Of a DNA stretch of 64,000 nucleotides, positions 9,487 through 45,865 are shown one piece after another (the first letter of the stretch is position 1; every line of letters starts with the position of its first letter). The stretch covers positions 27,404,001 to 27,468,000 of the forward strand of contig NC_134473.1 of NCBI RefSeq assembly GCF_964194025.1, read 5' to 3'. The position numbers and the translations under genes are program-made. The notes under the pieces were generated by a model. It saw only the letters and a program-made list of their open reading frames with translations. It was not told the DNA's origin and searched no databases. Source of the stretch: Convolutriloba macropyga (lineage: Eukaryota).

Positions 9487-10358
9487 GTGGCTGAAATGAT
9501 TATACATCTTTACGAGCAAGCTAGCAGTGAATACCAACAAGCAGCTGATATGAACGCGTTGAGGGTCAACCAGTACAAATTATGTTGGCTCGTATACATC
9601 ATAGGAGCTGTGGTTGGAGCGAGAATGACTGCTAGTTGCCAGGAAGATAATGAATCACACGACGCGCAACTAATCTGCAGAGTTCTTTTGCTTGTCCGCC
9701 ACTTAGAAGCACAACCGGTCGAAAAAACGTTGGACCACCTTGAAATTGCAATCATCTCCTTTTTTGACCAGTTTAGACGCATCTACATTGGCGAGCAAAT
9801 GCAAAAGATGTCCTACGTTTACATAACACTTTCGGAAGTAATGGGATTGAAAGATGAAACGATGATTTTAGAGTTGATTGTGAACAAAATCCTGAACAAC
9901 CTGAAACTCTGGTCCTCGAACAGTATTATTCTATCACAGACGCTGCAGCTTTTGAGTGACCTTTCATTAACCTACAGTGGGTTGAGAAAACTAGCCAAGC
10001 TGGAACCGGTACAGACTTTACTTAGAAATCACTCTGGCGAGGTTCTGCCGTTTTTGAGCCTAGACAATCACGGAATATCTGAAGATGATTTACGACACCG
10101 AACCACATTTTATACTTCGTTAACAAGGTTACTTCTCGTTGACCTTTGTGACGATGATGACAGATTTGAGGAGTTTTTGCAACCTCTGACAGTAGCGCTG
10201 GATTCTTTGGCGCAACATTTCATGAATGGTGCTGTTATAATGAACTCGGAAATTTCGAGGCGAGTCTTCATTGGGGTGTGTCGAGATCTGCGTGGAATCG
10301 TTCTCGCACTCAACACCAAGAATTACTTCCTGATGTTTTTCGAGTGGTTTTATCCAAG
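9487..10358 (+). CDS. XPO7: Exportin-7 exon 3
   Basis: tttag|GTG; WLVYIIGAVVGAR, FFDQFRRIYIGEQ, RTTFYTSLTRLL, IGVCRDLRGI; donor AG|GTTAGC. Confidence 0.95.
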
Positions 10359-10521
10359 GTTAGCGCTCGAAGCTGATATCTGCTCTGAGACTATGCTCGT
10401 GCAATTCTTGAGACTTTTTACAGCGCTTCTTTTGAAGTTTGGAGCGCTCGAACTTCCACTTTGCACCTACAATTGTATTAATTGCATTTTTAGATGTTTT
10501 TTGAGTTGATTCTGTCTCTAG

Positions 10522-10999: not shown

Positions 11000-11130
11000 A
11001 GAGTGCAGTTCTCTGTTGGTGAAGTATGGAGAGCGAATGCTGTCGACTGAGGTGCCCAAAGAGAAAGAGTATCCATTGAGACTGAAGGGGATCTGCACCT
11101 CTTTCCACATACTAAAAAACGCACTCTCTG
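11000..11130 (+). CDS. XPO7: Exportin-7 exon 5
   Basis: tttcag|A GAG gives ECSSLLVKYGERMLSTEVPKEKEYPLRLKGICTSFHILKNALS G|gtgagt. Confidence 0.93.
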
Positions 11131-12132
11131 GTGAGTCAACGCTGCTACAAAAGATCCGGCCTATATGTAGCAAATGAGCTCGGAGCTCAATAAGCTTGTG
11201 CAGATTTGTTTAGTGGGAGACTTCATAGTCTGCTTCATAATTGTTTAAATTAGCCAGCATTAGCAAACACCAAGTGCTGTTGGTATTTGGTGCTATTTTA
11301 ATACGGCTTACTAGACTCTAACTGTGATTCACCGAAATTGTTTAAAAGAGATAATTCATGGGGAGAAGGGCGGTTCTGAGGACTTTTACCCCCTCCCACT
11401 TAAAACCCCCCTCAATCAACCAAACCCAATGCTCATCCCGCCACCTCAGTTAAGCTAAGACGTTATTATCTTCCAGTGGGTTGCAAGTACTTAAAACGAA
11501 CTAACTGCTCAAAACGAACTTTTTCCTTTACGGATGAATTTGCTTACATCTGCTGAATTTCTTGCAGTGAGTTCTTACTTTTTTAAAATCTACTTTGTTA
11601 TTCATCTGTGAACTTCGCTTTTGTGATGGTCTAGTCGTATGCACGTTCCAATAGTAAATGACTTCCACCCTAAAATTCTGGGCTTGATTGATTTAAAAAG
11701 TATTTGAAAGAATTTCAAAAAGAAGATGAAAAGAATCGAAAGCTAACGTTAACGTGGGCACTGTTGCTAGAGTGACTTGTGAGATTTCCGTTTGTGCTCA
11801 CATCTTAATGGATGCTTACATATGGCAACACACAGGTGCTCTTGCATTATTGTTATAGAATTATTTATTAGCCGCAAAAGGGTAGCTGGGGCTCTTTTTG
11901 ATCATCTTTCTTTTTACAGTCCAAAGCGTTTTGATTTTATCGGTGTGGTGTCTTTTTTACGACTCGAAGGTGAGGATTGGGATTCTACAGGTTTCAAGTT
12001 TGTTCATGTTGAATCTTGACTTCTTTCTATTCGAACATTTACTTCCGTTTTGAAGGTTGACTTTTGTTTTTGATCATTTGACTTTCACAGTAGATTGGTT
12101 TGTTATATATAGTAATAAACTGCTGGTATTAT

Positions 12133-14116
12133 TAATAGCCGCACAGCGATAGCTGGGGCTATTATTGGCCTTCTCTTGGTTTTTAATAGCGGCACAGCGA
12201 TAGCTGGCCTTCTCTTGGCTTTTTACAATTCAAAGAGTTTGGATTGTATTGAGGCGCTGTTTTTTCTTAAGATGTGTTCGCACATTTTTCAATGACTTTG
12301 ATCTATCAAAACGCGATAAACAGGTAAAGCCCAGCGGGAGTTAAGTTTCATTAGAGGCGCAAAGTGGGCATCAGTAGTCCTTGAAATGCTTAGAGTGGTG
12401 CAGCTGCTGGGATAGCCTTAATTTAAGGTTAAAAGGCCAATTTTAGGAGTTTTGGTCTCAAAATGGTGCAATTTTTCATGTTTTTTGTGATTTTGAGTTT
12501 TTTTTACTTGATTAGTCTTAGGTTGAAGTTTTTGAAAGTTGACGAAGGCCTTTTGCGAGACAAATTTACTTGTTGTGACCATTTTATGAGCTATCTGTTT
12601 TTGTACTACAAATAAAAACACGCAAAATGATACTATTTTTTGCTCTTTTTTTCAAGTTTTTTGAAAATTGTCATTTTTTGATGTTTTTCAGCTTCAGGAG
12701 CCGGGAAATCTCCTTTGAGTTTTGATAATAGAGCACTGCATAGTTTCTAGTAATAATATGTTGGTTTTAGCATTTAAATGTCTCGAATTTCTGCATTTTT
12801 TGATAAATTTTTTTAAGGTTTCCTAAAGTTTTGGTCAATTTTTGATATTTGTCCAATCTCAAGTGCCAGAAAACATATTTCACGGTCTGATAAAAAGTTA
12901 CTGCATAGTTTTTAATTTCAATGGATTTGTTTTCAACAATTTAACTTTTCGATTATTGGAAATTTTTTTATAAAATTTGCAATTTTTTTTTCAATTTTTC
13001 AATTTGTCTTTCAATTTTTCAAAACATTTGTCTTTTATTCAGTTTTTCTTGCCTCAGTAACCAGGTAATCTTGTCCAGGGTTTGATAATATGTTATTAAA
13101 TATTGCTAGGGGTCAATTGAACGGGTTTCAACATTTTAATAGATTGAATTCCTATTTGAAATTTGAGATTTTTTTCTAAAAATTATTGCCTATTGATCTT
13201 TGGGCCCATAAAGGCTTGGAATTGGGTTAATGAATAGCCTGTAGATACACAGAAATGATTCTGAAGTTATTAATATCACGATTTTTGGCAACATTTCATT
13301 AAAATTCGCAATTGGTTTTAAAAATTTTTGGTCACTTTTGAAGTAATCGATCTTCAAGGGCCAATGAATTTTTTCCAGTTCATGCAGATTTAATTCTGGC
13401 CCGATTTCAGAAACGAAAATTGGTTTTAAACATGTTTTTGAAATAGGAATTTATAAAGAGATGAAATTTTGCCTAAGGGATAAAAGCTTCAAGAGTTTCA
13501 GCAATGAGTATATTTTTGTTTAGTTTGTTTGATTGTTTAGTTTCTCAATTTTTTGAGATGAATTTGTTTGTGTTTTGGCTGGCATTGTTCAATTGATCTG
13601 CTGGTCAGATTAAGTACTTCTTAAGTTTTTCATTCAATTCTTCGAATTGTATTTCAGAACTTGTCCTACTATGTTTTTTATTTCGTCGTCGCGATTTTTG
13701 TTACGACCATATGACGTCGCAAACACTTAAATCTGTTTTTTGTTCATTCGTTCATGCAATTTTAACTGACTTCATTTTTCGCTCTTAGTACAGCGAGTTT
13801 TTTGTTCTTTCGTGTGACTAAATTTTCAGTCACACTTGACTTACCTCACTCACAAAAATGACTTCCTCTCTTTGAAATTGACTTTTCTTTACTTTAATTC
13901 AAAGAGATAAAGTCAAATAGGTATGGTCACTAAATGTAGGTTATTAGAGAGCGGCTAATAGAGGCAGCAAAAACTTATACAGATTTTTAATCAAAATGTA
14001 ATGTATCTGCCTTCAATGAAAAGACGAATTTTTTTGGTTGGTCTTTTTAACTCTTTTTTAGACTGCAGATCTACGAAGCTATTGCGGCTATTTTCTGGCA
14101 ATCTGCCAGCTATGTT
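12133..14116 (+). mobile_element. HINE/Helentron-like copy (~2 kb) with duplicated 5' end, degenerate ~180-bp internal repeats and a nested family-B fragment
   Basis: 5' TAATAGCCGCACAGCGATAGCTGGGGCTATTA; 3' TGCGGCTATTTTCTGGCAATCTGCCAGCTATGTT. Confidence 0.8.
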
Positions 14117-14378
14117 ATATCTGTTTTCAAAATTTATTCATTTCTCGGTCACCTGCAAACCACTCAATCCACTCAACCGGATTCTGCTGTCTAGACGTAG
14201 GTTCACGGTTAAAAGCGCTTCATGTTAACTTATGGTCCGCCACCTTCTTTTTGACCCCCTTCTTCTCTCCTCTCACCCACGCTAGTCTGCTTAAGCTTAA
14301 GGTAGCTACAAAAAGCAATCCCACCCCAGTTGTTTGAAGCAGTTCGTCAGACGCTAGTCGGTTATGTCTTTATCCTAT

Positions 14379-15265
14379 TAATAGCCGCCTCATCTTCGCC
14401 TATTCAGCCGGCTTTTTTTACAATTCAAAGAATTTGAATCGTATTGGGGTGCTTTCTTTTTTTAAGATCTGTTCACACATTTTAATGATTTTTGAAGTCA
14501 AATTGGAGTAGTGATTTTGGTCACGCCGAAACAGGAAGTGGAGCGAAAAGGCGAGTTGTTTTGCGGCGTGAAATTTTTTCGCTCTAAATTTAAAGTAGAG
14601 TGAGAAAACTGTTTTTGAACAAAATTTTCGCTTTCTCGCTAGTGGTTTTTTGTTCGCATTCGGCAATTTTACTTCGATTTTTACTGTTTTTTTCGATTTT
14701 TTGGATCGGATTTTTTTCTAAGTGGTTTTCCCAATCCAATCATATTCCGTACTAGGTCTAGCTTTTTGTTTAGTCAATGAAAAATTTTTGAATTGTGCGT
14801 CAGGACTTGTCCTATGTTTTTTTTTCGCGATTTTATTACGACCATATGGCGTCACAACCACTTCAAATCGCTTTTTATTCATTTGTTCATGCAATTTCAG
14901 CTGAAGTGCGTTCGTGACGTCATTTTCCGCTCTTAGTAGAGCGAGTTTTTTGTTCTTTCGCGTGACTAAGTTTTCAGTCACACTTGACTTACCTCACTCA
15001 CAAAAATGACTTCCTCTCTTTGAAATTGACTTTTATTTACTTTAGTTCAAAGAGATAAAGTCAAATAGCTATGGTCACTAAATGAAGGTTATTAGAGAGC
15101 GGCTAATAGAGGCAGCAAAAACTTTTACAGATTTTTAATCAAAATATAACATATCTGCCTTCAATGAAAAGACGAATTTTTTGGTCTGTCTTTTTTACTG
15201 TCTTTTTGAGACTGCAGATCTACGAAGCTATTGCGGCTATATTCTGGCTATCTTCCAGCAATGTT
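14379..15265 (+). mobile_element. HINE/Helentron-like copy (~0.9 kb)
   Basis: 5' TAATAGCCGC; body colinear with 20218-21280; 3' TGCGGCTATATTCTGGCTATCTTCCAGCAATGTT. Confidence 0.8.
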
Positions 15266-16885
15266 TCAAATCGAAGGGCTAGAATTTTTGACCACGTTTT
15301 AGTGACTCTTACCTATCTAACATATCTACGTCCCTCACTGACCGACATTTCTAAAAATTGGTTGTTTCTACTTTTGTATTGCCTTGTCTGTACTTCTTTG
15401 AAAGAAATAGCTTGTACAGCTTTTCGAGTCGTTCCCGTTATGATACAGTATCATTTTTAGCTAAAGCATTTTTTCACGACTTGTATTTTGGCTTTTGTTT
15501 TCTAGCATTGACTTCTGTTTTAGAATTTTGACTTCTGTTTTTGGACATAGGACTAATACATAGTGATTAGGTACTGCTGGCAATGTTCAAGATCTGAGTG
15601 CTATTGATATGCGGCATATCTTCTGGCCTGTGATTGAACTCATCGACGGGCAGCTAATTTTTTTTTACTTTGACACTTTGTTTTCATTAAATTTTATTGA
15701 AAATATGATTTTTGCCCCTTTTTGGAAATATTTTGTTTTCTTCTAACCTAATATCATTAATGATGGTATTCTTGGTTGCTATTGAGTGATAAATGAAGTT
15801 AATTAAGTGTCTTTTTTTGAGTTTATGGCAAATGGTTTTCAATACTTTGACACTATTTCTTAAAATGTTTTAAGCTCGAGTCTTTTTTAGTATTTGTTAG
15901 TATTAGTATTAGGGTATTTAGAGTATTTATTGTTTTTGCGGTTTTTAGAGTATTTATTTTGTTTAGAGTTGTCCTATCGTTGAATCTCATTAAAGACAGG
16001 TCTCATAGGCCGCTGTTATAATTTATTTTAATCGATTAATTTGCAAAAGGTCTAAGCGATTTCTTTATGAATTTGACTTTCATTCTTGAATTCAAGAAAT
16101 ATTATCGAGCGTACTTTTTGTCGATTTATCGGCTCAATTTTTCAGCTAATGGTTTCATTCACTGATTTACCGTTTGGTTTTGAAAGGTTTAAATGAATTC
16201 GTGAGTCTTGCCATTATTTGTAGTTCCTTTGTCACTTTTTCAGCAATCTGAAGTGCTGAGAAGTATTTCTTCACTTTAAAAATGTTAAGATATGATATAT
16301 TTGAGGAATTTGGCTTGTAGTTATGAAGTTTTCTTAGTTTGGCGTCTTTGGTTTTAAACGTTTCTGATTTGTCCCTATTTTCTTCAGTTTTTTGGTTTGT
16401 TTTTGCTTTGTCTGTCATTTTGCTTTGTCTTCGCACAAGGTTATTGTATTATGTACTCATTGTAAGGACTACTAGAGTCAATAATTAATTGCTCTTGAGC
16501 TAAGTTCGTAGAAAATATTGTAAACATGTGTGTCTTTTATATGGAAAATTTTCGCTTGACAGTTTTGACTCTTCGAGTGACTTCCACGCCCTTGACTTTT
16601 TGCGTTTCGGTTGATCTAAAATTCTCTCTCAATCACAATTTCAAGCAACTAAACTCAATAGGCGGCAATTCAGTACTAAAATTCAAATGAAAAGTGCGCC
16701 GAAACAAGTGCCATTTTTCACTTTAAATCTTTATAGTGGTATATGTTAACCTCTAATGTTGTTATTTGAAGCCCACTTCTTAGTCCATTTAGCCCCTGAC
16801 CCCACCCCCGACTGAAGCAGGCTGCAATTGGTTAGAGCTCCCACTAGTCGTTCGAGAGCAATTCTTCCGATGTTTAGTCGGTTAT

Positions 16886-17387
16886 TAATAGCCGCACAGC
16901 GATAGCTGGGGCTATTATTGGCCTTCTCTTGGTTTTTTTTTATTTCGTCGTCATGATTTTTGTTACGACCATATGACGTCACAGCCATTTTTTATTCATT
17001 CGTTCATGCAATTTCAACTGAATTGCATGTGTGACGTCATTTTTTGCTCTTAGTGGAGCGAGTTTTTTTGTTCATGCGCGTGATTAAATTTTTGGTCACA
17101 CTTGACTTACCTCACTCTCAAAAATGACTTCCTCAATTTGAAATTGAATTTTATTTACTTTAATTCAAAGAGATAAGGTCAAATGGGTGTGTGTCACTCT
17201 AAATGAAGGTTATTTGAGATCAGCTAATAGAGGCAGCAATAAATTATACAGATTTTCAATCAAATTATAACAGATCAGCCTTCAATGAAAAGAAAAATTT
17301 TTTTGGTCGGTTTTTTTTTACTGTTTTTTTAGACTGCCGATCTACAAATCTATTGCGGCTATTTTCTGGCAATCTGCCAGCTATGTT
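16886..17387 (+). mobile_element. HINE/Helentron-like copy, internally deleted (~0.5 kb)
   Basis: Both termini identical to those of the 20218 copy; 5' end joined at a poly-T run to the 3' half. Confidence 0.85.
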
Positions 17388-18223
17388 GTTTTCAAAGTGA
17401 TGCTATTATTAGGAATTCTCAAAGCACTAGATTTTAGAAAAAGAAATTGTCTTTGTTTGGATTTTCATTTTTGCGCATATAAGGCGAGGGCTTTGTTGAC
17501 TTAGATTGATGTTGCTTTAAAATGTTAAGTGTAAGGTCATCAGTCCAGTCAATTTTTTGAATTGTTATTTAGGACATGTCTTGAGTGCTTCTAATGTGAT
17601 TCACAATTTTACGTGCGCTTTTTTACAAATTCTTGAATTTACCAACGGGTAGCTAATGTTTGTTATCACGGACACAATTTGTGGCCAAGAATTATTAGTG
17701 AATACTTCATTTTTCGCCTATTTTTTTCTTGTTGTCTCGTTACTTAATATCCTTAATGAAATTCTGGTTTGTTGCTACTGAGGATTAAATGAAAATAATC
17801 ATTGGTTCGATTTAACAGCTACTGTTTTCATGTCTCTGAATTTCAGTGAATTTTTGAGGTTTTGCTACTGTTTCTACTTTTTGTTGTCTTATCTTTTTGT
17901 TTCTATAGGACACTAATTGGGGTTATGTTGATCGGTTTATCTTTCTCTGTTCAATTGTAATGCTTTCTATGACTTTAATTATAAATTTCAGGAAATTTTA
18001 TCGAATTTTGCAAGTTTTTATCCGGTACTGTTTTGACTTATCGCTTAGTCCTAGTAATGATAGATATCATGGTTTCTATCGATCAATATGTTAATAGAAA
18101 TGTTTTTTTTCTAAGCGTTGCTTATGATGCCTGTGATTTGTTAATTATTTGTTAAAAATTTTGACACTTGGAAAGAATAAAAATTGTTTCTTTAGTTTTG
18201 CATGTTTTGTTTTGCTGATTTTG

Positions 18224-18282
18224 TTGTTCTTGTTGGTCTTGTCGCTTAGTCTTTTGTTCTTGTTGGTCTTATCGCTTAGTCT
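18224..18282. repeat. 30-bp tandem duplication
   Basis: TTGTTCTTGTTGGTCTTRTCGCTTAGTCTT twice. Confidence 0.85.
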
Positions 18283-18879
18283 TAATAACAGCTCTCCTGT
18301 GCCTTCTTGTGTGGCGTGCATGTGGTCAAACTCATAGCTCCAGTTTATAGCTAACATTTTTATTGACTGAGATACCGTTCGTTTTCGAAATAAGCGTGTG
18401 AGTTTTTGAAACTTGCCTTCATCCGTAGTTCTATTGCCACTTTTTCTGAGATCTGAACTGCTGAGAATTATTATTTATTTCACTTTCAAATTTTATTCTT
18501 TTCTGTGGTTAAGGAATTGGGCATATTGATATGTCGTTTTTGTACTTTGAGGCCACTGACTTTCAAAATTTTTTGTAAAATTGATTTTTGCAGTTTCTTG
18601 AGTTTTGCCTCCTTTTGGTTTATCATTTATTATCACAGGGTTGTTTTTTGCACTTTATGTAGGGTTGGGTAGAGTCATTTTTTCAATAAATTGGTGTTTA
18701 TAATAATGATTCTTAAAACACTAGATCTTTGAGACATAAATCTTCAAATAGTTTGATGTATGATTTTGCGCATTTGTATGTTTTTGCGCATGGGTGATGG
18801 GTTTTTATGACTGTGTTCGTTTGGTGTTAATGTAAAAATGTTAATTGTCAGGTCATTAGTTAATTCAATTCTTTGGATT

Positions 18880-19350
18880 AGTGCAGGATTTGTCCTGCTA
18901 TGTATTTTTGTTTTGTCAAGATTTTTGTTGCGACCAAGACGTCACAATGCTTTAAAATCTGCTTTTTGTTCATGCAATTTCACCTGTATTGTGTGCGTGA
19001 CATCATTTTTCACTCTTTGTGGAGCGAGTTTTGTTCATTCGCGTGATGGAGTTTTTGGTCACACGTGACTTGCTTCACTCTCAAAAATGACTTCATGACT
19101 CTAAAATTGACTTTTCTTTACTTTAATTCAAAGAGATAAGGTCAAATGAGTTTGTATCACTCTAATTGAAAGTTATTTGAGAGCAGCTAATAGAAGCAGC
19201 TATAAGTTATACAGATTTTTAGAATCAAAATTTAACATCCCAGCATTCAATTAATTAAATGATTTTGGCCTGTTTCTTTGACTATCTTTTTTGAGACTGC
19301 AGATCTACGAAGCTATTGTGGCTATTTTTGGACAATATGTCAGCTATTTT
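18880..19350 (+). mobile_element. Older diverged HINE 3' portion containing the left breakpoint of the triplication
   Basis: Colinear with the HINE 3' half; decayed end TGTGGCTATTTTTGGACAATATGTCAGCTATTTT. Confidence 0.75.
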
Positions 19351-19734
19351 TATGTAATTGCAAGTGTTCTGTTGTAAAGAGTGTTTTTTTTTGGGGGGGG
19401 TACTAACGGATAGATCCGAAACTTGATAGTCTTAATTTGAGATTAATGAAAGAACAGTTTGCATCCTCGTGACGTACATTACACGTCTTGCGTTATCGTT
19501 TAATTCCTGTTATGGTGGTCCGACTTAAGCATTTCACAATTTATGTTAATTTTGTAAGGCTGTTAAACTTTTTGTAATATGCTAGTTTTATGCTTCTGTT
19601 TCCAAGTGCGATAACAAAAAGTTTGCTGCTTTCTGTTTAGAATATACAAGAGTTCCGGTTTTAGTGATGTACACGCGAATTGTCATCCTTCATTGACTGT
19701 TTTGTTAGAGAGATATGATTATGAACATTTTTAG

Positions 19735-19968
19735 GTGGCTTTATCAACTTTGCGATCTTCCAGCTGTACGAGGACAAGTCGCTTGAAGACGCTCTGAAGA
19801 TGTTCGTGCGGATGCTCCTGTCCATGTCTGCCTCCAACTTCCTACAGTATCCCAAACTGAGTCTCAACTACTACAACCTGTTGGAAGTACTCAGTGGTGA
19901 CCACATCTACTTCCTAGCCAATCTGGACATCGATGTGTTCATATTCATACTACGCACTGTCGCCGAGG
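19735..19968 (+). CDS. XPO7: Exportin-7 exon 6
   Basis: tttag|GT GGC gives GGFINFAIFQLYEDKSLEDALKMF...YPKLSLNYYNLLEVL...VAE G|gtaagg. Confidence 0.95.
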
Positions 19969-20216
19969 GTAAGGACGGACTGACGACCCTTACATTGATT
20001 ACTATGTACTTAAACAAAGTTTTACTATTAACGTTGAAAACAACCTTGAAAACTGTTGACGTTGAAAGCAACCGAGTGTTTAAGAAATCGAGCGAAAGCA
20101 AGCAATTCCGTCTTACAACCCTTAAACATTCTTGGAACTTCTGTATCAAGTTGATAACTGAACGTTAGTCACCTCGAATACTTGTACCTATATAACTAAG
20201 CACATCATTTGTTTAT

Positions 20217-21281
20217 TAATAGCCGCACAGCGATAGCTGGGGCTATTATTGGCCTTCTCTTGGTTTTTTTTACAATTCAAAGAATTTGAATTGTATTGGG
20301 GCGCTGTCTTTTTTTTTTTTTTTTTAAGATCTGTTCACACATTTTCATGATTTTTGAAGTCAAATTGGAGTAGTGATTTTGGTCACGCCGAAACAGGAAA
20401 TGGAGCGAAAAAGCAAGTGGTTTTGCGGCGTGAATTTTTTTCGCTCTAATTTTAAAGTAGAGTGAGAAAATGGTGTTTGAACAAGAATTCGATTTCTCGG
20501 TAGTGGTTTTTTTGTTCACATGCGGCAATTCCACTCTGATTTTTACTGTTTTTTCGATTTTTTGGATCGGATTTTTTTCTAAATGGTTTTCCCAATCCAT
20601 TCACAGCTCATTCTAGGCCTAGTTTTTTGTTTGAATTGAGTTTTCATTTCTCGCTAGTGGTTTTTTGTTCACATGCGGCATTTTGACATTGATTTTCTGT
20701 TTTTTTTCCTATTTTTTATCTTATTTTTTTAAAATGGTTTTCTCAATTCACTCATAGTCCATTCTTGGTCTAGTTTTTCTGTTTAGTCAATGAAAATTTT
20801 TTGAATTGTACGTCAGGACTTGTCCTGCTATGTTTTTTATTTCGTCGTCATGATTTTTGTTACGACCATATGACGTCACAGCCACTTTTTGTTCATTCGT
20901 TCATGCAATTTCAACTGAATTGCATATGTGACGTCATTATTCGCTCTTAGTGGAGCGAGTTTTTTGTTCATGCGCGTGATTAAATTTTTGGTCACACTTG
21001 ACTTACCTCACTCTCAAAAATGACTTCCTCAATTTGAAATTGACTTTTATTTACTTTTATTCAAAGAGATAAGGTCAAATGGGTGTGTGTCACTCTAAAT
21101 GAAGGTTATTTGAGATCAGCTAATAGAGGCAGCGATAACTTATAGATTTTTGATCAAAGTATAACAGATCAGCCTTCAATGGAAAGACGAATTTTTTTGG
21201 TCTGTCTTTTTACTGTTTTTTTTTAGACTGCCGATCCACGAATCTATTGCGGCTATTTTCTGGCAATCTGCCAGCTATGTT
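20217..21281 (+). mobile_element. Full-length young HINE/Helentron-like element inserted at TT, with two ~155-bp internal repeats
   Basis: Absent at the paralogous sites in units 2 and 3 (GTTTATTGAACC); subterminal IRs AATAGCCGCA/TGCGGCTATT; 3' hairpin CTGGCA-ATC-TGCCAG. Confidence 0.9.
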
Positions 21282-21509
21282 TGAACCTTTCAAATCTAAA
21301 TTTAAGTTATGCTTAGTGCGGCAGGCATTTAAATCATGTAGAGTACCGCCTGTGAAAGGAGAAAGTGGTTCAACATTTCATCATAAATTATTTAGCAAAT
21401 ATTTTGCGGGCGTTATAAGTACTCGAAGATCACCACTGTGTCCTTGATAGAATGTGAAGCAGTGATGATGCATTCCGAATCAGCTGCTTTTTATGTCTCT
21501 TTTTTTCAG

Positions 21510-22018
21510 GGCTGGTGTCGGTAGATTCCACAATCAGCACTTCTTGTTGCTGCACCTTAGATCAACTCATTACTTTCATGTACAAGAAGTTCAGCAAGCA
21601 GAAGAAGAACAAGAACAGTCTCGAACCACCGGTCAGTGCTCAATTCCTACAAGTCACAGAGACTCATGGCGAACTCTTTGACCAAATGCTGGTTACAATG
21701 CTTTCTACCGTGATCTACGACGACTTACGTAATCAGTGGTCACTTTCGCGGCCTCTGATCGGTCTGATATTGCTCAGAGTGACGTCATTTGAACGGTTCC
21801 GGCTTGAACAGATTCAGTCACAACAGGACGAGAAACGTGCAGCTGGTGTGACTCAAGCTTTCAACAGCTTGATGGAAGGAATTGAGAGAAATCTAAGTAA
21901 TAAAAATAAAGATAAATTTACGCAGAATGTGGCAGTGTTCAGACGAGACATTAGCGAAGCTTTGAGAAGCAGTAAAGATCAAAACGGAGTCGCGGCTTCA
22001 GGCGATGATATGATATAA
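21510..22018 (+). CDS. XPO7: Exportin-7 exon 7 (terminal); spliced CDS 3276 nt = 1091 aa
   Basis: tttcag|GG CTG; CCCTLDQLIT, RNQWSLSRPLIGLIL, LMEGIERNLSNKNKDKFTQN, then TAA; all seven exon phases join into one ORF. Confidence 0.95.
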
Positions 22019-22561
22019 TTGGAGTTACAGTCAAGTTGTATACGTTTAAATGATGAAAGCTATTAAACTTGTATATAAATTCAAAAGTGCAAATTTTAAA
22101 TCAATCGACATTTTTTCAAAGCCAATTACCCGAAATTTAACTACGATTTTTGAATTTTGCTAAGATTGTTATAATGGTAATTGAGATAAACGAAGATGTA
22201 ATTGCAAATTTTTCTAAATGGTCTAAAGTATTAATTGGGCAATCGAGTCCCATTTTTTAAGCCAGTTTTCGGAGGTTTTCAGAAGTAGTCGATTGAAGTT
22301 TGCACTAATGATAATAGTCACCTGGTTGTGCGAACTGCAGCTCTTTAATAGATGTATTTGGATATTGTTGTGAGCAGTCGTAACTCAGACACTTTTTGCA
22401 GCTCGCTCTGCTCTGCTTTATTTGATATGTGATGTTTGATATGATACATAAACTGATATGAAAGATAATGAGTGAGTAAATGAGCGAAACACGCTGACGC
22501 TTTCCTTTGAGTCTTCTCTCTCTGATTTACTATTTACATTATTTACATTTTGCAATATATT

Positions 22562-24866
22562 CTAATTACTCGATAACTCTCTACGAACCACTGGGAAAGT
22601 CGCGAACTTTTTGGAGCTGAAACTTTTGATGGCGAGGCTTTTAGTTGTTACGGCTCTTGCAGTTTCTAGCTCCTGGACAGACAACAGGTTAATAGACTGT
22701 TTTTTTTCTATTTCATCTGAGTGAATCGGTATCTGATATGCTTTGACCAAGTCAAGTATGCTGAATTTTTTTGCCATTAATTTCAACCATTGAAAGTTGA
22801 GGCATTGGATAACTATCTCTGACAGTTATGTAATTTAGAGATTGTTAGTCACCGCAGGGACTCCAATCGCCTATTTCTTTCTTCGGCACCATATGCAAAG
22901 GTGATGAATAAGGACTCTTAGATGACTGTATTGTACCAAGTCGTTGCATTTCATCAAAGGCATTTTTGGCAATTTTTAGTTTTCTGGAGTCAACTGTCTT
23001 AGTTTAGAGAAAACTTTGTTTCCCGGATGCTTCAATTATGTGGAATGTTCTGCTTCGGCATCAAAATCAACGTCACCAAAAACATCAGAACATTTTTCCA
23101 TGATTGCCCTTCTATCATTTTCAATTGACGAAAAGTCTTTGTACGGACTGATAAATGACTGTCTTCAACTGGTGGTAAAGAGTGTCTCGTAGAAAGACCT
23201 GTTATGTTGTCAGTTAAGAACAGGTTATCACAATTAATTGTAATTTTGAATTCATTCAGGAAGTCTAAGCCAAGAATATTGTCTTTGACATCTGCTAAAA
23301 AGAATGTGAATGGAAATGTTCTTCGCAAAGAAGGAATCGAAATTGATAACGGCATTCTGCCAAAAAATTTTAATTGAATCTCCATTAACTGTTCTACGTT
23401 TTGTTACAGTAGGTGTTACGAAGTCTTTGTTAACAAAAGTTGGCATAAGTATTGATGTCATTGAGCATGTGTCTGCTATGAGATCAATTGAATTGTCTCC
23501 TAATTTAGCGGCTATATGAATGCAGAGGTTACCCGCAGAGGTTACCGCGCACAAACTAGGGGTTACTAGTTTGATGGATTTGCTAGAGTTTGCGCGAGAT
23601 GTTTGCTCTATGTTTTTGGGCTTCTGTCGTGGCCGCTGACACCATGCTTTAAATTATTTTGCTTTCTCAGCAGAATAGAGATGATAGCAACAAACTTTTG
23701 GTCTTTGACCTGCTGTGAAAGGTCTATGTATATTTTCGATTGATCTGTTTGACTTTTTTTGTTTACTGATTGGTTATTTTGCGTTGAATGAGGATTGTAC
23801 AATGGTCTTGTTGGCATCTGCTGTGTAGAGGCTGCAACTACGTTTGAAGTACTTGTGGCAACTACAGTGTTTGAGTAGCTATAAATGGTATCGGCTTATT
23901 TTGCAAATTGTTCAACAGGAAGTTCTAGGTGGGCTGAGAGTGCCGTTTACACAGAAACTGGCATTACTTGCGTTAACCTGTGCTTTATGACATCTTCATC
24001 TAACGTCAAGTTACATTCAGCAAGCTTTCGTTGAATTCTCATCAAGCACAATGAAGTCTTTTGACCGTCCAATGCAATCATTCCCATGGCTTCTTCAACC
24101 ATTTCTTGTTTTGACTCCTGAACAATGCCGCAGATATTATGTTTGATGTCTCTACAATTCGCTATGCCCAATGGAAGATTGATTGCAACGTCTTCAGGAA
24201 TTGCAGCAAGTATGTGATGAAATTTTGTCTCATCATTTGTTATTCCGGCAGGGACAAATTGAGATTACATTTGACGGAACCATACTCCGGGAATTGACCT
24301 GGAGAAAACAGAAGTTTTTCACAGAAACTCCTCAACGTAGCCACCTGAAGCTAAATGTTGTTGAGCAAGCAACAATTTTGGATCTATCGCTCCAGCTAGA
24401 GTTTGGTATCCTGATGGAAATTTTCCCACAAAACCTGAACCTACAGGGTCACCTGAACCTGCACCTGTACCCGTCATACCAATACCTGTTATTACCCCAA
24501 CCTGTACCTACCAAACCCTGACCAGTACCTACCAAACCCTGACCAGTGCCTACCGAAACCAAACCCGAATCTACCGTACCCAAACCCCCCAAACCTGTAC
24601 CTACCGGGCTACCCCTCGAACCATCCATCACCGTAAAACCAGTAATGGGAAAAAATAACGGGGCCCCGGAAAAGAAACAAATTTAAGAAGTCGAGCAAAG
24701 GTAAAGTTCTCGAATTTTGTTGTAAAACGATTAAATTTCATTATCGTGAAGGAAAAAAAAGTTATTTAGCTTCCGTGTTAGGCGTATATTAACAGTTAAG
24801 GATCACCATTGTAGGAGTGAGGAATCCTAACTTAATATTTAAATACGCCTTTCCCTTTAAAACAAT

Positions 24867-24917
<51 letters not shown>

Positions 24918-37868: not shown

Positions 37869-40275
37869 CTAATTACTCGATAACTCTCTACGAACCACTG
37901 GGAAAGTCGCGAACTTTTTGGAGCTGAAACTTTTGATGGCGAGGCTTTTAGTTGTTACGGCTCTTGCAATTTCTAGCTCCTGGACAGACAACAGGTTAAT
38001 AGACTGTTTTTTTTCTATTTCATCTGAGTGAATCGGTATCTGATATGATTTGACCAAGTCAAGTATGCTGAATTTTTTTTTTGTCATTAATTTCAACCAT
38101 TGAAAGTTGAGGCATTGGATAATTATCTCTGACAGTTATGTAATTTAGAGATTGATAGTCACCGCAGGGACTCCAATCGCCTATTTCTTTCTTCGGCTCC
38201 ATATGCAAAGGTGACGAATAAGGACTCTTAGATGACTGTATTGTACCAAGTCGTTGCATTTCATCAAAGGCATTTTTGGCAATTTTTACTTTTCTGGAGT
38301 CAACTGTCTTAGTTTAGAGAAAACTTTGTTTCCCGGATGTTTCAATTATGTGGAATGTTCTGCTTCGGCATCAAAATCAACGTCACCAAAAACATCAGAA
38401 CATTTTTCCATGATTGCCCTTCTATCATTTTCAATTGACGAAAAGTCTTTGTACGGACTGATAAATGACTGTCTTCAACTGGTGGTAAGGAGTGTCTCGT
38501 AGAAAGACCTGTTATGTTGTCAGTTAAGAAGAGGTTATCACAATTAATTGTAATTTTGAATTCATTCAGGAAGTCTAAGCCAAGAATATTGTCTTTGACA
38601 TCTGCCAAAAAGAATGTGAATGGAAATGTTCTTCGCAAAGAAGGAATCGAAATTGATAATGGCATTCTGCCAAAAATTTTAATTGAATCTCCATTAACTG
38701 TTCTACGTTTTGTTACAGTAGGTGTTACGAAGTTTTTGTTAACAAAAGTTGGCATAAGTATTGATGTCATTGAGCCTGTGTCTGCTATGAAATCAATTGA
38801 ATTGTCTCCTAATTTAGCGGCTATATGAATGCAGAGGTTACCCGCAGAGGTTACCGCGCACAAACTAGGGGTTACTAGTTTGATGGATTTGCTAGAGTTT
38901 GCGCGAGATGTTTGCTCTATGTTTTTGGGCTTCTGTCGTGGCCGCTGACACCATGCTTTAAATTATTTTGCTTTCTCAGCAGAATAGAGATGATAGCAAC
39001 AAACTTTTGGTCTTTGACCTGCTGTGAAAGGTCTATGTATATTTTCGATTGATCTGTTCGACTGTTTTTGTTTACTGATTGGTTGTTTTGCGTTGAATGA
39101 GGATTGTACAATGGTCTTGTTGGCATCTGCTGTGTAGAGGCTGCAACTACGTTTGAAGTACTTGTGGCAACTACAGTGTTTGAGTAGCTATAAATTGTAT
39201 CGGCTTATTTTGCAAATTGTTCAACAGGAAGTTCTAGGTGGGCTGAGAGTGCCGTTTACACAGAAACTGGCATTACTTGCGTTAACCTGTGCTTTATGAC
39301 ATCTTCATCTAACGTCAATTTACATTCACCAAGCTTTCGTTGAATTCTCATCAAGCACAATGAAGTCTTTTGACCGTCCAATGCAATCATTCCCATGGCT
39401 TCTTCAACCATTTCTTGTTTTTGACTCCTGAACAATGCCGCAGGTATTATGTTTGATGTCTCTACAATTCGCTATGCCCAATGGAAGATTGATTGCAACG
39501 TCTTCAGGAATTGCAGCAAGTATGTGATGAAATTTTGTCTCATCATTTGTTATTCCGGCAGGGATAAATTGAGATTACATTTGACGGAACCATACTCCGG
39601 GAATTGACCTGTAGAAAACAGGAGGTTTTCACTGAAACTCCTCAACGTAGCCACCTGAAGCTAAATGTTGTTGAGCAAGCAACAATTTTGGATCGATCGC
39701 TCCAGCTAGAGTTTGGTATCCTGATGGAAATTTTCCCCCAAAACCTGAACCTAAAGGGTCACCTGAACTTGCACCTGTACCCGTCATACCAATACCTGTT
39801 ATTACCCCAACCTGTACCTACCAAACCCTGACCATTACCTACCAAACCCTGACCAGTGCCTACCGAAACCAAACCCGAATCTAACGTACCCAAACCCCCC
39901 AAACCTGTACCTACCGGGCTACCCCTCGAACCATCCATCACCGTAAAACCAGTAATGGGAAAAAATAACGGGGCCCCGGAAAAGAAACAAATTTAAGAAG
40001 TCGAGCAAAGGTAAAGTTCTCGAATTTTGTTGTAAAACTATTAAATTTCATTATCGTGAAGGAAAAAAATAGTTATTTAGCTTCCGTGTTAGGCGTATAT
40101 TAACAGTTAAGGATCACCATTGTAGGAGTGAGGAATCCTAACTTAATATTTGAATACGCCTTTCCCTTTAAAACAATAGATATATATTTTTAACTGTAAT
40201 GGAGGCATATATAGGGAAATCAACTGTAATAAAAAAGATAATCAACAAAGCTTATGAAGCTAAATCGTGGTTACA
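37869..40275 (-). mobile_element. Ty3/Gypsy relic, copy 3
   Basis: Protease ORF 38342-38863 (FIADTGS); RT fragments 37869-38259. Confidence 0.9.
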
Positions 40276-43200
40276 TAAAAATCATGAGTTCTATATTTCC
40301 GATTTCATTTTGAACGATTTGAGTTTTGTTTACATGACTATACTTGGTACCATGACCTCTAATTGCTCTTATATCCTGCAGAGTTGAGCGAACAATTTTA
40401 AGTTAATCGATCTCAACTACAATCTATTGTGTTTTGATCTTTCTCGAAAACTAACGGCTTTTGCTATATTTTTTGTAAATCGTCCTTCAAGAGTGTTTTT
40501 ATGCTCAAATTGTTGGATTTGAATCAAAAGGTTTTTCTTCACTGGTTTTTGTTTGTACGATTTTGATAATTATCTGACTGCTCTGTTTCTTGTTTTCTGT
40601 TTAAAATATTATGCCCATTGGTTAGTAGTGATCCGGAATTCTATCTTTTTCAGTTAGACAATTCGTTTTGTTGTCGATTTTGCCATTTTGATATTTTGGT
40701 TTTTTTCGTACCAAATCTTTCCGAAGTATTTTTCGCAAATTAGTTAGTGTGAAAACTGGATAGGCAGAATTATTGTTTTGATCTGTTCTAACGTTTCAAA
40801 GGAGAAAATTTTCTGTAGCCAAGTGCTATGTTATTGGATAGTAAAAAAAATAGTCACTTATTTCCTCGCCTCACTAGCGGACATTTGATCACCAAATACC
40901 CAGGATATTATATTTTCTGGGAGATTGTTTTGCAACGACGTTTTGAAGAATCAAATTGTTTTTGTACTCGTTAATGAAAACCACACAGCTTCACAGTCTG
41001 AACTCAAAATTTCAACCCCATCTTTCTTTCTGAACCTAAACGCCACCTATTCATTCTGCAAATATGCGGATATTTCTACTTTATCACCAATTTTTTTGAT
41101 TAACTTTTCTTCATTTCGTCAATTTGATAAGTTCTATCCTACTTATTACGCGCTAACGTGTGTCTGATTACATTTTAACGTTTGTCTGATTACATCTTAA
41201 CATTCGTTACTGAAAAACAACTTTTCTGCATGTCTTTATTCGATCTATATATCAATAACTTGTTTACCAACAAATTTTCTCAATCCAATTTTTTAGTTTG
41301 AATTTCCGACGGAGAGAATTTTTATTTCCTTAGAAGTAAAATATCCTAGCTGTTGATTTGAATGGTTTTGACGAGAATCATTTTTTCAAAAACAAGCTAT
41401 ATTTTCTCAAAAAACGTATTGAGAAGACTTTTACACAATGCGACTTTAGACAGCAAACACCGATTTTGTAGAAAACTACCGCAGAAAAATTAAAAGGGCA
41501 ACACAAACGACATTAGCAAAAATGAATTTTACGAAAGTCATGAAAATAAGTGACATCAAAGCCAGTGAAACAGGCTGCTGAAACTTGAACTCTTCAAAAT
41601 CTATTGCACTATCTGTAAAGATAAAGAATATATCAATTTGATTGGAAACAATTGTGGGGAGCATGCAACAAAAGCTGGACACAAACAAAAGTTCATAAGT
41701 AGCCGAAGTCAAATGGTGTCGAGGCCATTTCAATTAATGGTTTTAAGCCTAAGCCATTATATAGATCAAATCATGACTAATTGGAGAGCATCTAGCATCT
41801 ATCATTAATGAAACTTGACCACTGGACAACAAAATACAGTTACAAAACGGTCATAATCCAGAAAAACACGAATAGTTTGTGAAAACAGGTTGTCAAAGTG
41901 GTTAAAACTGTCAGCTTTCTTTTTAAAACACTAGATAAATTCAAACATTCCTAGTGAAAAAGCAACGAAAAACCATGATTAATGAGATTACGTGACAAAA
42001 CAACACAACAACTACTAAGGACAAAATCCGAAAAACAACTAATCTTTTTTGAAAGCAAGTGGTGTCAAGGTAGTGAAAACTGTTTGATGTGGAAACAACC
42101 TTCAACATGATCAAATTGGGATCCATAAGAGAGCCAACTAGAGTTGACATAAGGAGACTAAGTGATAGAAGAAAAGAATTATAAAAGATGAAAATTTCAA
42201 AAACTCGTTAATATTTGTTCAAAATGACTTAGTGTCAGTTTCGCTAAAAACCGTTATGTGCTCTTTGAGGGGTTAAGTAGTGCAACTATGCATCATTAAA
42301 ACATACATATTCCTATCATTAAGTGTGCATAGTGAAAATGAAAAAAAAACAAGTCATTTCCGCCTGTGAAAATAAATTTGCTCTTAAAGACTGGAAATCT
42401 CTTTAGACACCATTCTCTCACTTCATTTTGAAAAGCTCATCGAATACAAGCCACGACTTATAACTTCTTGATTTTCGCTCCGCTTACTAATTATTCCAGT
42501 GTGGCTAAAATCACTACTCCAATTTGACTTCTCATTGGCAAGAAAATGTCAAAAAAGTTTGAACATCTTTAAAAAAAATATAGCACATCAATACAGTTAA
42601 TTTTTTTTGAATTGTAAAAAGAGAGAGAGAGAGAGAGCAACCTTTTGAGCGAGCGAGAAAAGTAGATGTGAAAAAATTTCACTAATCGAGCGGAATTTTG
42701 TTGATCCGTGAATTTCGTGAAATTGCGGAATTTCGTGAAACGTGCGGCAGTTGCTTAGTTTTTTTTAACTCAGATTATTCAGTCACAGGTGTTTCTCTCA
42801 ATCATCTATACTAGTAATAGTGCGTTTGGAAGCATCTTTGACCATCTGAATAAAATCTTACCATTTTGGTGTCAATTTTTACCATTCTGCCGTATTTTAA
42901 GCCAACTTTAACTTTGGTTTGTTTTTGTTACAGAAAATCGATTGAATTTGGTCAAATTTTTGCCTAATTTTGACCGAGTTTTGTTTTTTCACAGATTTTT
43001 TAATTTTTAAACTGGTTACATTGTCTGTCAATTGGCAATGTTTTGCGATCTAATTTTTGTTTGTATTAGTCTTTTTAGAGTCGCAACTTAAAGTAAAATT
43101 TTTCAGATTCTGCTTCATTTTTTCCAGTTGGTTTTTTTTCAAACTGTAAACTATATTTTTTAGCCAAAGATGTTTGTTTCATCTTTTTCGGCTAGTAATA

Positions 43201-43616
43201 ATGTTTTGAAGTTTTTTAACGTCTAATGCAAATAATATAAATTTAGATGATCATTTGAGCTAATTTTGCCTTTTACCCAGTGCAACGCTTTTACCACTCT
43301 TTACGGTCTTCTTCAATTTTTGTTACCAATGGGGGTCTTTTTATTGTTCGGCTTAGTTTTCTAGTCTATTTTCTTATATAAAAATTTTTGATTTGTGTGC
43401 TTAAAATGGAAATATTTTAATTGAAATTTGGCTTACTTTCATCTGTGTGTTCAGGTTGTTGCATGTCTACTCCGGTTTGCGGTTTTCTGATAGAGTTTGA
43501 TGTTTGCTATTGTATCGACAGATGTCTGAGAAATTGTTTTGCCAATAGGTAACAATTCAATGTTTTTATAATATAATCTTACAAATTTGTAAGTTTTCAT
43601 TTTTTGAAAAAAAATG

Positions 43617-44275
43617 TGATTAGGATGTGTGTGATGGTGGTCTTGACTAGGTCATTTGATGAGCAGAGAAAAATTTCAGAAGGCTGTCGTAAAGTTACTG
43701 ATGGGAAGCATCATTTTGCATTTAGTAGGAAATCTTGTATAAGAAATTTTTTCTGTTTTAGGTTTTCTCCGTTTGTACTGTTTTTGCAGTTTTTTTTTCA
43801 ATTGGTATTTGAATAATAACTGTTTTTTCTGCATAGTTTTTGCTGAAAGTTTTCGGAGTCGCAACTTGACGAATTTTAGACAGATTCTTTGTTTTAGCAG
43901 CTTTTTTATTTCATAATTTGTTGGGACGTCTGTATTGATTAGGATGTCTGTGTTGATTCAAATTGTTGATTAGGATGTCTGTGATGGTGTTCTTGGTTAG
44001 GTTATTTAATCAACTGAGCAAAATTTTAGAAGGCTGTCGTAGAGTTACTGATGGGAAGCATCATTTTGCATTAAGTAGAAAATCTTGTAAACCAAATTTT
44101 GTCATTTTTCTAGGTTTTCTCCGTGTGTACCGCTTTGCTGTTTTTTTTTTCAATTGGTATTTGATTAATAACTGTTTTTCTGCATTTTTTGCTGATATAT
44201 TTTTTGGAGTTTATATTTTAAACTTTTATTCATGTTCTTTATGTTTTAGCAGATTTGTTTTTCACAATTGACTGG
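43617..44275 (+). repeat. Diverged ~350-bp tandem duplication
   Basis: TGATTAGGATGT.TGTGATGGTG and AGAAGGCTGTCGTA.AGTTACTGATGGGAAGCATCATTTTGCATT recur, with units starting at 43617 and 43967. Confidence 0.8.
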
Positions 44276-45730: not shown

Positions 45731-45865
45731 NNNNNNNNNNNNNNNNNNNNNNNNNNNNNNNNNNNNNNNNNNNNNNNNNNNNNNNNNNNNNNNNNNNNNN
45801 NNNNNNNNNNNNNNNNNNNNNNNNNNNNNNNNNNNNNNNNNNNNNNNNNNNNNNNNNNNNNNNNN
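45731..45865. other. Assembly gap
   Basis: Run of N. Confidence 1.

Follow-up and report, generated by a model that had tools for sequence, protein, structure and literature searches.

An apparently young head-to-tail triplication of the XPO7 gene tail, joined at a 4-bp microhomology, in the acoel worm Convolutriloba macropyga

The window analysed here, a stretch of 64,000 nucleotides from the chromosome-scale scaffold C6 of the acoel worm Convolutriloba macropyga, contains the 3' end of the XPO7 gene three times, as positions 19277–43268 consist of three direct, contiguous head-to-tail units, all on the + strand and without any spacer. With a probability of about three in four we regard this array as a real and young triplication of a ~7.6-kb segment, which would have started with a microhomology-mediated duplication, quickly gained its third copy and since left the extra copies to decay. 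The genome searched is txConMacr16, a HiFi/hifiasm primary assembly of 1.18 Gb, and the alternate haplotype lies outside it.

The structure of the array can be read directly. Every unit starts with TTTGACTATC (at 19277, 28029 and 35621), GAGCTAATTTTG is located at 28021, 35613 and 43257, and each unit contains the last two XPO7 exons (234 + 509 = 743 nt), a poly(A) signal and ~6 kb of transposon-rich downstream DNA. An earlier note on this DNA had described a head-to-tail array with unit lengths of 8752, 7592 and 7644 bp, and exactly these lengths were recovered. In self-BLAST the units are 96–98% identical to each other; their divergence is 1.3–1.8% and the longest stretch that is identical between two of them measures 649 bp. 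There is no N run within 19277–43268; two N runs, at 45731–45865 and 58906–59052, are located outside the array. Units, joints and outer ends are as follows.

19277..28028, + strand: unit 1, 8752 bp, completes the XPO7 gene (sequence match, self-BLAST, MAFFT)
28029..35620, + strand: unit 2, 7592 bp (sequence match, self-BLAST, MAFFT)
35621..43264, + strand: unit 3, 7644 bp (sequence match, self-BLAST, MAFFT)
28021..28038, no strand: joint 1, GAGCTAATTTTG followed by ACTATC (exact match, genome-wide search)
35613..35630, no strand: joint 2, identical to joint 1 (exact match, genome-wide search)
19277..19280, no strand: TTTG microhomology, left outer end (exact match, BLAST)
43265..43268, no strand: TTTG microhomology, right outer end, followed by single-copy flank (exact match, BLAST)

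The two internal joints, which had been described as identical, are indeed letter-for-letter copies and remain alike for at least 60 bp on either side. Across the 1.18 Gb of the assembly their 18-mer has just two occurrences, at 28021 and 35613 in the array, and the reversed control has none. Unit-specific letters 63–107 bp away distinguish the two joints, and since these letters differ, a single chimeric read cannot account for both. The only homology between the outer ends is TTTG, as had also been noted before, with different letters preceding and following it; a BLAST comparison of the 800-bp breakpoint regions (18700–19500 against 42900–43700) found no longer homology, the best match being 14 bp, off-register and with an E value of 0.27. 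By our own estimate a microhomology of at least 4 bp is expected in roughly 1–3% of random joints. No hairpins or palindromes beyond those of shuffled sequences were found at either breakpoint (z-scores +1.2 to +1.6, weaker than shuffles).

Three-way MAFFT alignment also placed the length differences between the units. The 1065-bp HINE ascribed to unit 1 is present and private to it, as is a 33-bp gap at 22393/22394, where ~33 bp had been reported missing. The deficit of ~66 bp proposed for unit 2 at 33596 exists, but the alignment gives it as 62 bp at 33594/33595, a size that is ambiguous because the gap is placed in a 22-bp tandem repeat. Units 2 and 3 retain the empty site of the unit 1 HINE (GTTTA/TTGAACC, without target duplication), so that this insertion is a clean dated marker showing that the HINE family moved after the amplification. 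A further HINE copy contains the left breakpoint, and unit positions 1–75/90 match many places in the genome.

18860..19351, + strand: HINE copy with the left breakpoint inside, its final ~75 bp opening every unit (self-BLAST, 18884–19351 against 20814–21282)
20216..21280, + strand: 1065-bp HINE insertion in the last intron, private to unit 1 (MAFFT; contig 7 of DNA run X1 begins precisely at 28968, the corresponding point)
22697..25109 in unit 1, also 30417–32811 and 38004–40382, no strand: 2.4-kb dispersed repeat (transposon) with >40 genomic copies of 79–87% identity

The proposed identity of the gene as XPO7 was borne out, the spliced model being assessed exon by exon. The exon at 9487–10506 matches the Pfam family PF25795 (TPR_XPO7) at 202 bits (cut-off 27) and thus contains the exportin-7-specific repeat region, and P0001, a 288-aa relative that is 87–91% identical, is colinear in tblastn with 11019–11132, 19734–19970 and 21509–22015. 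NCBI names the protein P0002, which matches the unit 2 exons at 100% identity, 'exportin-7-A-like [Convolutriloba macropyga]'. For the triplicated exons themselves we found no useful match among the solved structures of the PDB, only a sub-threshold CRM1_C match in Pfam and nothing meaningful in NCBIfam, which is a prokaryotic library; their identity thus comes from TPR_XPO7 on the upstream exon and from the named relatives. Together with an RNA contig that joins the exons, the colinearity of P0001 and the NCBI name identify them as the C-terminal end of the same XPO7 protein. In the searched primary assembly the XPO7 tail exists in only three copies, all in the array, and neither a further paralogue nor a leftover haplotig was found elsewhere in it.

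9487..10509, + strand: large internal XPO7 exon, open frame (Pfam PF25795 TPR_XPO7, E 9.7e-60; ORF)
11019..11130, + strand: antepenultimate XPO7 coding exon, final 112 nt, as matched by P0001 (tblastn, P0001 residues 1–38; donor G/GTGAGT)
11131..19734, + strand: 8.6-kb intron packed with HINE copies, contains the left breakpoint 458 bp 5' of the penultimate exon
19735..19968, + strand: penultimate XPO7 exon, unit 1, 234 nt, flanked by ag and gt (tblastn, exon comparison)
21510..22018, + strand: last XPO7 exon, unit 1, coding part, TAA stop at 22016–22018 (tblastn, exon comparison)
22062..22104, + strand: unit 1 ATTAAA signal (22062) and the place matching the RNA poly(A) addition site (exon comparison, X5 contig)
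28487..28720, + strand: penultimate exon copy, unit 2, F>S and L>Q (tblastn, exon comparison)
29197..29705, + strand: last exon copy, unit 2, CAA>TAA at 29508–29510, D>N and T>A (tblastn, exon comparison)
36077..36310, + strand: penultimate exon copy, unit 3, N>K and F>S (tblastn, exon comparison)
36785..37293, + strand: last exon copy, unit 3, open frame, S>G, K>E, V>L and A>V (tblastn, exon comparison)

Unit 1 is the copy that finishes the working XPO7 gene, which is intact. Its exons carry no derived change, and the relative P0001, with 87% identity, agrees with unit 1 at nearly every replacement site, T>A being a site where it shows a third residue. The exon copies differ from unit 1 at 8 (unit 2) and 9 (unit 3) of 743 positions, which agrees with the count given earlier, and the F>S change previously assigned to both was found in both (TTC>TCC at 19759). 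In unit 2 five changes are non-synonymous (the TAA stop and four replacements) and three synonymous; in unit 3 there are six non-synonymous changes, all of them replacements, and three synonymous ones. The private exon changes, seven in unit 2 and eight in unit 3 per 743 nt, amount to 0.9–1.1% compared to 0.8–1.0% for the whole unit. With exons changing at about the non-coding rate, units 2 and 3 look like decaying partial gene copies and are probably without function, as judged from their sequence, even if all their splice sites and ATTAAA signals are retained.

Read evidence was taken from Logan contigs of two DNA runs (X1 and X2) and one RNA run (X5), contigs that drop rare variants. An X5 contig is spliced from 28718 to 29196; its loose end at 28486 carries the last letters of the exon ending at 11130, and it reaches a poly(A) end at the unit-2 place 29791, where its 18-A loose end is not encoded in the genome. 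This contig, which represents the majority sequence, has a non-unit-2 letter at every listed unit-2-private site and, with letters of its own at 28683, 30035, 30102, 30327 and 30353, constitutes a fourth version of the sequence, so that further alleles exist. The NCBI model of 217 aa on unit 2 starts in the transposon of unit 1 (24164–24211) and skips the TAA stop by an extra intron; we consider this 'exportin-7-A-like' model an artefact on a broken partial copy.

A three-way tree, which the earlier note had named as a check, was rooted with eight other genomic copies of the embedded 2.4-kb transposon. It unites the three units in a clade with 100/100 support, but its inner fork is a polytomy that gives no order (branches 0.005–0.010), and the shared-derived sites are spread evenly over the unit pairs (2, 3 and 4). 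The F>S change common to units 2 and 3 does not by itself establish a clade of these two. Unit 1 has the shortest branch, with 36 private sites against 61 and 75 in the other units, and exon constraint accounts for only part of this difference. No hybrid pattern indicating a crossover was detected in the middle unit, the site patterns being interleaved along the units. Their heterogeneity is only weak (chi-square p 0.025), the longest tract of identity being 649 bp. For the longest tracts permutation gave p of about 0.05, and a microsatellite misalignment at 27390–27401 accounts for one of them; we rejected a mosaic made by crossover or gene conversion. The polytomy, the even shared sites and the missing hybrid mean that the steps were close in time or that a single event made all copies; a hybrid middle unit is expected only if time separated the steps, and its absence is compatible with a quick second step.

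As to the repair pathway and the order of the two steps, we infer that a first tandem duplication would have joined an intergenic point ~21 kb downstream (now 43268) to the last long intron of XPO7 (19277), using the 4 bp TTTG via end joining or replicative template switching. Soon afterwards the third copy could have come from slippage between these two, or from homologous exchange after they misaligned, the joint being copied exactly, and the HINE would have inserted into unit 1 after the amplification. Since the segment begins within an intron and runs past the end of the gene, the last two exons and the poly(A) site still come from unit 1, and units 2 and 3 would be promoter-less 3' fragments behind a working poly(A) site, drifting without selection. 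The same two steps had been suggested before. A non-homologous TTTG joint without flanking homology fits a microhomology-mediated duplication as the first joint, but the polytomy does not show the order of events; the identity of the second joint with the first agrees with expansion by unequal crossing-over, but the hybrid middle unit is missing.

Two other origins have to be weighed against this one. In a one-step amplification the segment, either excised or copied as a circle closed at TTTG or else re-replicated or rolled, would have returned as a three-copy concatemer with units of equal age, and the polytomy, the even shared-derived sites, the identical joints and the lack of a crossover mosaic all speak for it. 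An early unequal exchange after the first duplication gives the same pattern, no sequence mark of a circle or of rolling-circle replication is present and the unit ends are not at a HINE terminus, and the route commonly documented is a duplication with a later unequal exchange, so that we think the one-step origin unlikely, if far from negligible. An origin driven by transposons, through unequal recombination between two HINEs or Helitron-type read-through transduction of the flank, is suggested by the left breakpoint ~75 bp from the 3' end of a HINE in a HINE-packed intron. We rejected both forms because the right breakpoint has no HINE and no likeness to the left one: direct repeats of one family at both outer breakpoints were not found, the HINE being at the left one only. 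Moreover the units begin inside the HINE tail and not at an element terminus, and there are no breakpoint hairpins, which makes this origin hardly conceivable.

A different question is whether the three copies are real and whether the extra ones are used. The genome of C. macropyga has a heterozygosity of 3.65%, its assembly, at 1176 Mb, exceeds the 867 Mb estimated from k-mers by 36% and the mean HiFi read length of ~8.1 kb is roughly one unit (PMC13650328). With such heterozygosity, above the inter-unit divergence, and an oversized assembly, copy-number errors are not rare a priori, and hifiasm could have strung divergent haplotypes, or paralogues from both of them, of a locus with one or two copies serially into three. 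Among the listed read-derived contigs none bridges either joint, which we attribute to the high-copy HINE tail, as this begins ~10 bp past the joint with a summed word depth of ~195,000 and breaks de Bruijn contigs; the fourth sequence version in X5 also fits an error. Against this stand the seamless joints without N, whose joined ends share only 4 bp so that an overlap needs real reads, the different unit-specific letters near them, the lack of a leftover haplotig and an unbroken inter-unit identity of 649 bp at most, not long enough to make HiFi reads overlap falsely. Also, X1 contigs of a single run contain all three letter combinations at 28557/28560, thus three versions within 4 bp. X1 contig ends coincide with the inter-unit differences at the HINE site (28968) and the 33-bp indel, and both X1 and X2 have contig ends at the 62-bp indel (25911–25972). 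X1 contig depths, uncalibrated because the stretch compared with the contigs included no single-copy flank, are 47–60 for collapsed contigs and 19, 27 and 42 (sum 88) for variants and fit neither three nor four haploid doses cleanly. As to the variable copy number that the earlier note had thought likely, contigs of the two DNA runs are equal in length and place, the animals coming from one laboratory culture of a species that also buds asexually. Altogether we judge an assembly artefact very improbable. Use of the extra copies, through read-through transcripts spliced to unit 3 (or unit 2) terminal exons that give alternative XPO7 C-termini, or as a small gene of its own on unit 2, has in its favour the retained signals, the open frame of unit 3, the NCBI prediction and the break of the X5 RNA contigs at 28557–28560, where the units differ. 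Its chances seem slighter again, as the NCBI model starts in a transposon and needs an intron around the TAA, both copies sit behind a poly(A) site in use, their exons have changed about as fast as non-coding DNA, mostly by replacements, and the spliced X5 contig has no unit-2-private letter at any listed site. It is quite improbable, too, that the array is present on only one of the two very divergent haplotypes of this worm, which is kept clonally, as a segregating copy-number variant, with unit 3 occasionally being spliced to the XPO7 body by read-through; if so, the gene would have a second C-terminus with six replacements, and one could observe how a partial tandem duplication begins to give rise to alternative terminal exons.

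The preferred reading, a real and young triplication, can be compared with several known systems. The array resembles false haplotypic duplications in its near-identical neighbours within a 3.65%-heterozygous genome and an oversized assembly, but differs in that its joints show neither a gap nor a contig end, and in having three versions, no haplotig and a novel joint that occurs twice with different neighbouring variants. At Bar and double-Bar on the X chromosome of Drosophila melanogaster, a tandem duplication is said to have become a triplication by unequal crossing-over. Both cases share a head-to-tail duplication whose novel joint would be copied unchanged by misaligned recombination, resulting in three units with identical joints. 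In Bar, however, a transposon lies at the first joint and the copy-number steps were observed genetically, whereas the XPO7 array has a first joint with only 4 bp of microhomology and no observed two-copy intermediate or reversion.

Microhomology-mediated tandem duplications have reportedly been explained by MMEJ or FoSTeS/MMBIR; like the XPO7 array they share 2–15 bp at the breakpoints, have no flanking repeat homology and are in direct orientation. Templated insertions or complex rearrangements as in FoSTeS/MMBIR are not present here, and a simple joint cannot tell the pathway. In Drosophila and other animals, young tandem duplications reportedly include partial duplicates of the 3' ends of genes. 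As in the XPO7 array, the boundary is intronic, the parent stays whole and a promoter-less fragment without the 5' exons decays; unlike them, the array has two extra fragments and not one, of which one is still open and the other auto-annotated as a gene. The XPO7 tail array is thus an ordinary young structural variant, as joints at microhomologies, tandem copies that expand and 3' gene fragments that decay are all textbook and raise no new question of mechanism. Many tandem duplications have been noted in the C. macropyga genome, to which the array is a well-defined addition, and its value is mostly practical, since a RefSeq-type 'exportin-7-A-like' model with a transposon as first exon and an invented intron skipping a stop can now be flagged as an artefact.

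The 3' end of XPO7 (exportin-7) is present in three direct copies with 96–98% identity (self-BLAST), which follow each other head to tail and form an array without any N letter within 19277–43268:

19277–28028, + strand, unit 1 (8752 bp)
28029–35620, + strand, unit 2 (7592 bp)
35621–43264, + strand, unit 3 (7644 bp), followed by TTTG

TTTGACTATC is found at 19277, 28029 and 35621 and GAGCTAATTTTG at 28021, 35613 and 43257, and the 18-mer joining them occurs only at 28021 and 35613, in the window as well as in the whole 1.18-Gb assembly (1,175,981,408 bases in 4694 pieces searched). Around joints 1 and 2, the internal junctions, 60 letters on either side are identical. TTTG represents the only letters that the unit ends have in common with the left flank (...CCTGTTTC/TTTG) and the right flank (TTTG/CCTTTTAC...), and BLAST between the two 800-bp breakpoint regions revealed no further homology. 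Thus exact coordinates and self-BLAST confirm the unit lengths proposed in an earlier note made from the sequence alone, and the joint comparison and BLAST do the same for its identical internal joints and for TTTG as sole homology of the outer ends. The left breakpoint is located within the 8.6-kb last long XPO7 intron, 458 bp upstream of the penultimate exon, where it cuts the tail of a HINE copy (a Helentron-like non-autonomous transposable element), the opening ~75 bp of every unit being high-copy; the right breakpoint is intergenic. As neither a HINE nor another repeat was found at the right breakpoint, repeat-mediated recombination and Helitron-type transduction both fail as mechanisms. 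Hairpins or palindromes above shuffled controls were not found at the breakpoints. The same intron carries at least four HINE copies (13636–14116, 14783–15265, 16936–17396 and 18860–19351), all in one orientation and with 77–94% mutual identity.

Every unit carries on the + strand the XPO7 penultimate exon (234 nt) and last exon (509 nt including the stop) with ag/gt exon borders intact in all three, an ATTAAA signal and ~6 kb of downstream DNA including a 2.4-kb dispersed repeat and an older repeat. The exons were searched one by one: the upstream exon 9487–10506 matches Pfam TPR_XPO7 (E 9.7e-60), and P0001, a relative of 288 aa, is 87–91% identical to and colinear with 11019–11132, 19734–19970 and 21509–22015 and aligns also to units 2 and 3. 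The last-exon protein matches the genome at only the three unit locations, and no haplotig copy of a unit was found in the assembly. The frame of the last exon, used in a word search, led to P0002, an NCBI protein model named 'exportin-7-A-like [Convolutriloba macropyga]', with 100% identity to the unit 2 exons. This model (217 aa) spans 24164–24211, 28489–28722 and 29196–29702, derives its residues 1–16 from within the 2.4-kb repeat of unit 1 and treats 45 residues around a TAA stop as intron. It rests on unit 2, which is broken, and is probably an artefact of annotation. The 2.4-kb repeat itself (22697–25109, 30417–32811 and 38004–40382) has sharply defined ends and occurs in more than 40 copies across the genome, at 79–87% identity (including loci L001–L008). 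It showed neither terminal inverted repeats nor long terminal repeats, one of its ORFs (23035–23385, minus strand) has no Pfam match, and it contains a 21-bp tandem repeat at 24500–24560. Downstream of XPO7, a very acidic, serine-rich open frame of 738 aa (60371–62587, + strand) without Pfam match is probably a single-exon gene or a large exon of a disordered protein, and an inverted repeat pair of ~700 bp with 96% identity (56369–57069 and 58203–58905) adjoins an N run (58906–59052).

In a three-way alignment with 7519 ungapped columns, units 1, 2 and 3 show 36, 61 and 75 private substitutions, respectively, ~9 of the latter being microsatellite misalignment at 27390–27401, and pairwise divergence is 1.3–1.8%. 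The alignment also recovered the previously noted 1065-bp HINE (20216–21280) and 33-bp gap (22393/22394) private to unit 1, while the loss of ~66 bp at 33596 reported for unit 2 is indeed a gap, of 62 bp at 33594/33595. For the HINE, the filled site can be compared with empty sites at 28967/28968 and 36557/36558, the entry point being GTTTA/TTGAACC without target-site duplication. This filled/empty pair indicates that the HINE family moved recently, and the insertion postdates the triplication.

Could the array be an assembly artefact, with haplotypes stacked in series? Heterozygosity of C. macropyga is 3.65%, higher than the divergence between units, the assembly exceeds the k-mer estimate by 36%, and it was built with hifiasm --primary, purge_dups and YaHS from HiFi reads with a mean of ~8.1 kb (PMC13650328). 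All of this calls for caution, but both joints are seamless and the sequences joined have only 4 bp in common, so that no overlap could have made them without reads containing them. Haplotypes stacked in series would usually abut at a gap or at the end of a contig. Moreover, joints 1 and 2 differ in unit-specific letters within 63–107 bp, and the longest tract identical in two units (649 bp) would not suffice for a false overlap of HiFi reads. We therefore regard an artefact as very improbable and the array as real, a young tandem triplication of an ordinary kind that involves part of a gene.

Of the runs for which Logan contigs were located, four belong to the genome project, one dates from 2016 (X5) and one bears the label of another organism (X6). 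Contigs of X5, X6 and the DNA runs X1 and X2 were compared with 25100–30400, an interval including joint 1 as well as the exons of unit 2. At most of the variable sites, X1 and X2 contigs agree with the majority, and their ends coincide with inter-unit differences: in both runs they stop at 25882 and resume at 25973, on either side of the 62-bp indel, X1 contig 7 begins at 28968, the HINE filled/empty point, and X1 contigs are broken at 30093/30104 within the 33-bp indel. X1 contains all three unit combinations at 28557/28560 (depths 42, 27 and 19, uncalibrated as the stretch has no single-copy part). Thus unit-specific differences exist in the reads of at least two runs, which come from two specimens of one culture and are not genetically independent. 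None of the listed contigs bridges the joint because the HINE tail (summed word depth ~195,000), from ~10 bp past it, halts de Bruijn contigs. X5 behaves as RNA: in one contig the last letters of the upstream exon precede 28486, and a second, spliced 28718>29196, terminates at 29791 with 18 A's absent from the genome. The spliced contig has the non-unit-2 letter at all listed unit-2-private sites, including C at 29508, and unit 3 is excluded as source by difference count. Over 28561–30400, X5 represents a fourth sequence version, which matches unit 3 at 29363, 30007, 30094 and 30103, has letters absent from all units at 28683, 30035, 30102, 30327 and 30353 and a 3-bp gap at 30079, and retains the 33 bp missing from unit 1. 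Its own letters and the retained 33 bp show that a further allele exists, probably the XPO7 allele of the other haplotype, which could act as an outgroup. Another X5 contig (depth 78) covers 29977–30400 (unit 1 equivalent ~22290–22680), ~190 bp past the mapped poly(A) site, and may represent an isoform with a longer 3' UTR, or else unspliced or genomic carry-over. X6, from another study, contains 151-letter records 98–100% identical to the locus, one with unit-3-type letters at 28557, 28560 and 28595; the records reflect either carry-over or a sample of the same species that was labelled differently.

The exon-by-exon comparison bears out the earlier count of 8–9 differences from unit 1 in 743 positions. 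Unit 2 differs at 8, with F>S, L>Q, D>N, T>A, CAA>TAA at 29508 and three silent changes, and unit 3 at 9, with N>K, F>S, S>G, K>E, V>L, A>V and three silent changes, F>S being common to both as had been noticed. At almost every replacement site P0001 agrees with unit 1, so the polarisable changes are derived in units 2 and 3 and none in unit 1; at the T>A site it has N, which leaves this site without polarity. Private exon changes amount to 0.9–1.1% in units 2 and 3, in line with their whole-unit rates, and to 0 in unit 1 against ~3.5 expected. Judged from these substitutions, the pattern is that of one constrained copy (unit 1) and two unconstrained fragments; XPO7 is kept whole through unit 1, and units 2 and 3 are probably decaying 3' fragments.

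For the three-way alignment tree that the earlier note had suggested, eight copies of the embedded 2.4-kb repeat from elsewhere in the genome served as root. The three units group together with 100/100 support on branches 0.0054, 0.0093 and 0.010 long, and the inner fork of this clade is a polytomy. In the repeat comparison, polarised private derived changes number 10, 17 and 16 in units 1, 2 and 3, and shared ones two (units 2+3), three (1+3) and four (1+2); F>S alone is insufficient for a clade of units 2 and 3. Site patterns are interleaved along the unit with weak heterogeneity (chi-square p 0.025), and the middle unit shows no sign of being a left/right hybrid. The polytomy, the even shared sites and the missing hybrid indicate that the three copies are effectively of the same age, which suits either a single amplification event or a duplication followed by fast unequal exchange. 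Of the proposed microhomology-mediated duplication with later unequal crossing-over, the 4-bp joint stands, and tree and site patterns accommodate either order of events. Since the units differ from each other by less than alleles of C. macropyga do on average, the array could have arisen after the two haplotypes separated and would then be polymorphic. Two by-products are of practical value: the faulty NCBI model at unit 2, and a HINE insertion whose timing relative to the triplication is known. The sequence is compatible with both routes, and we favour the two-step one because duplication followed by unequal exchange is the commonly documented route; the triplication is nothing categorically new.
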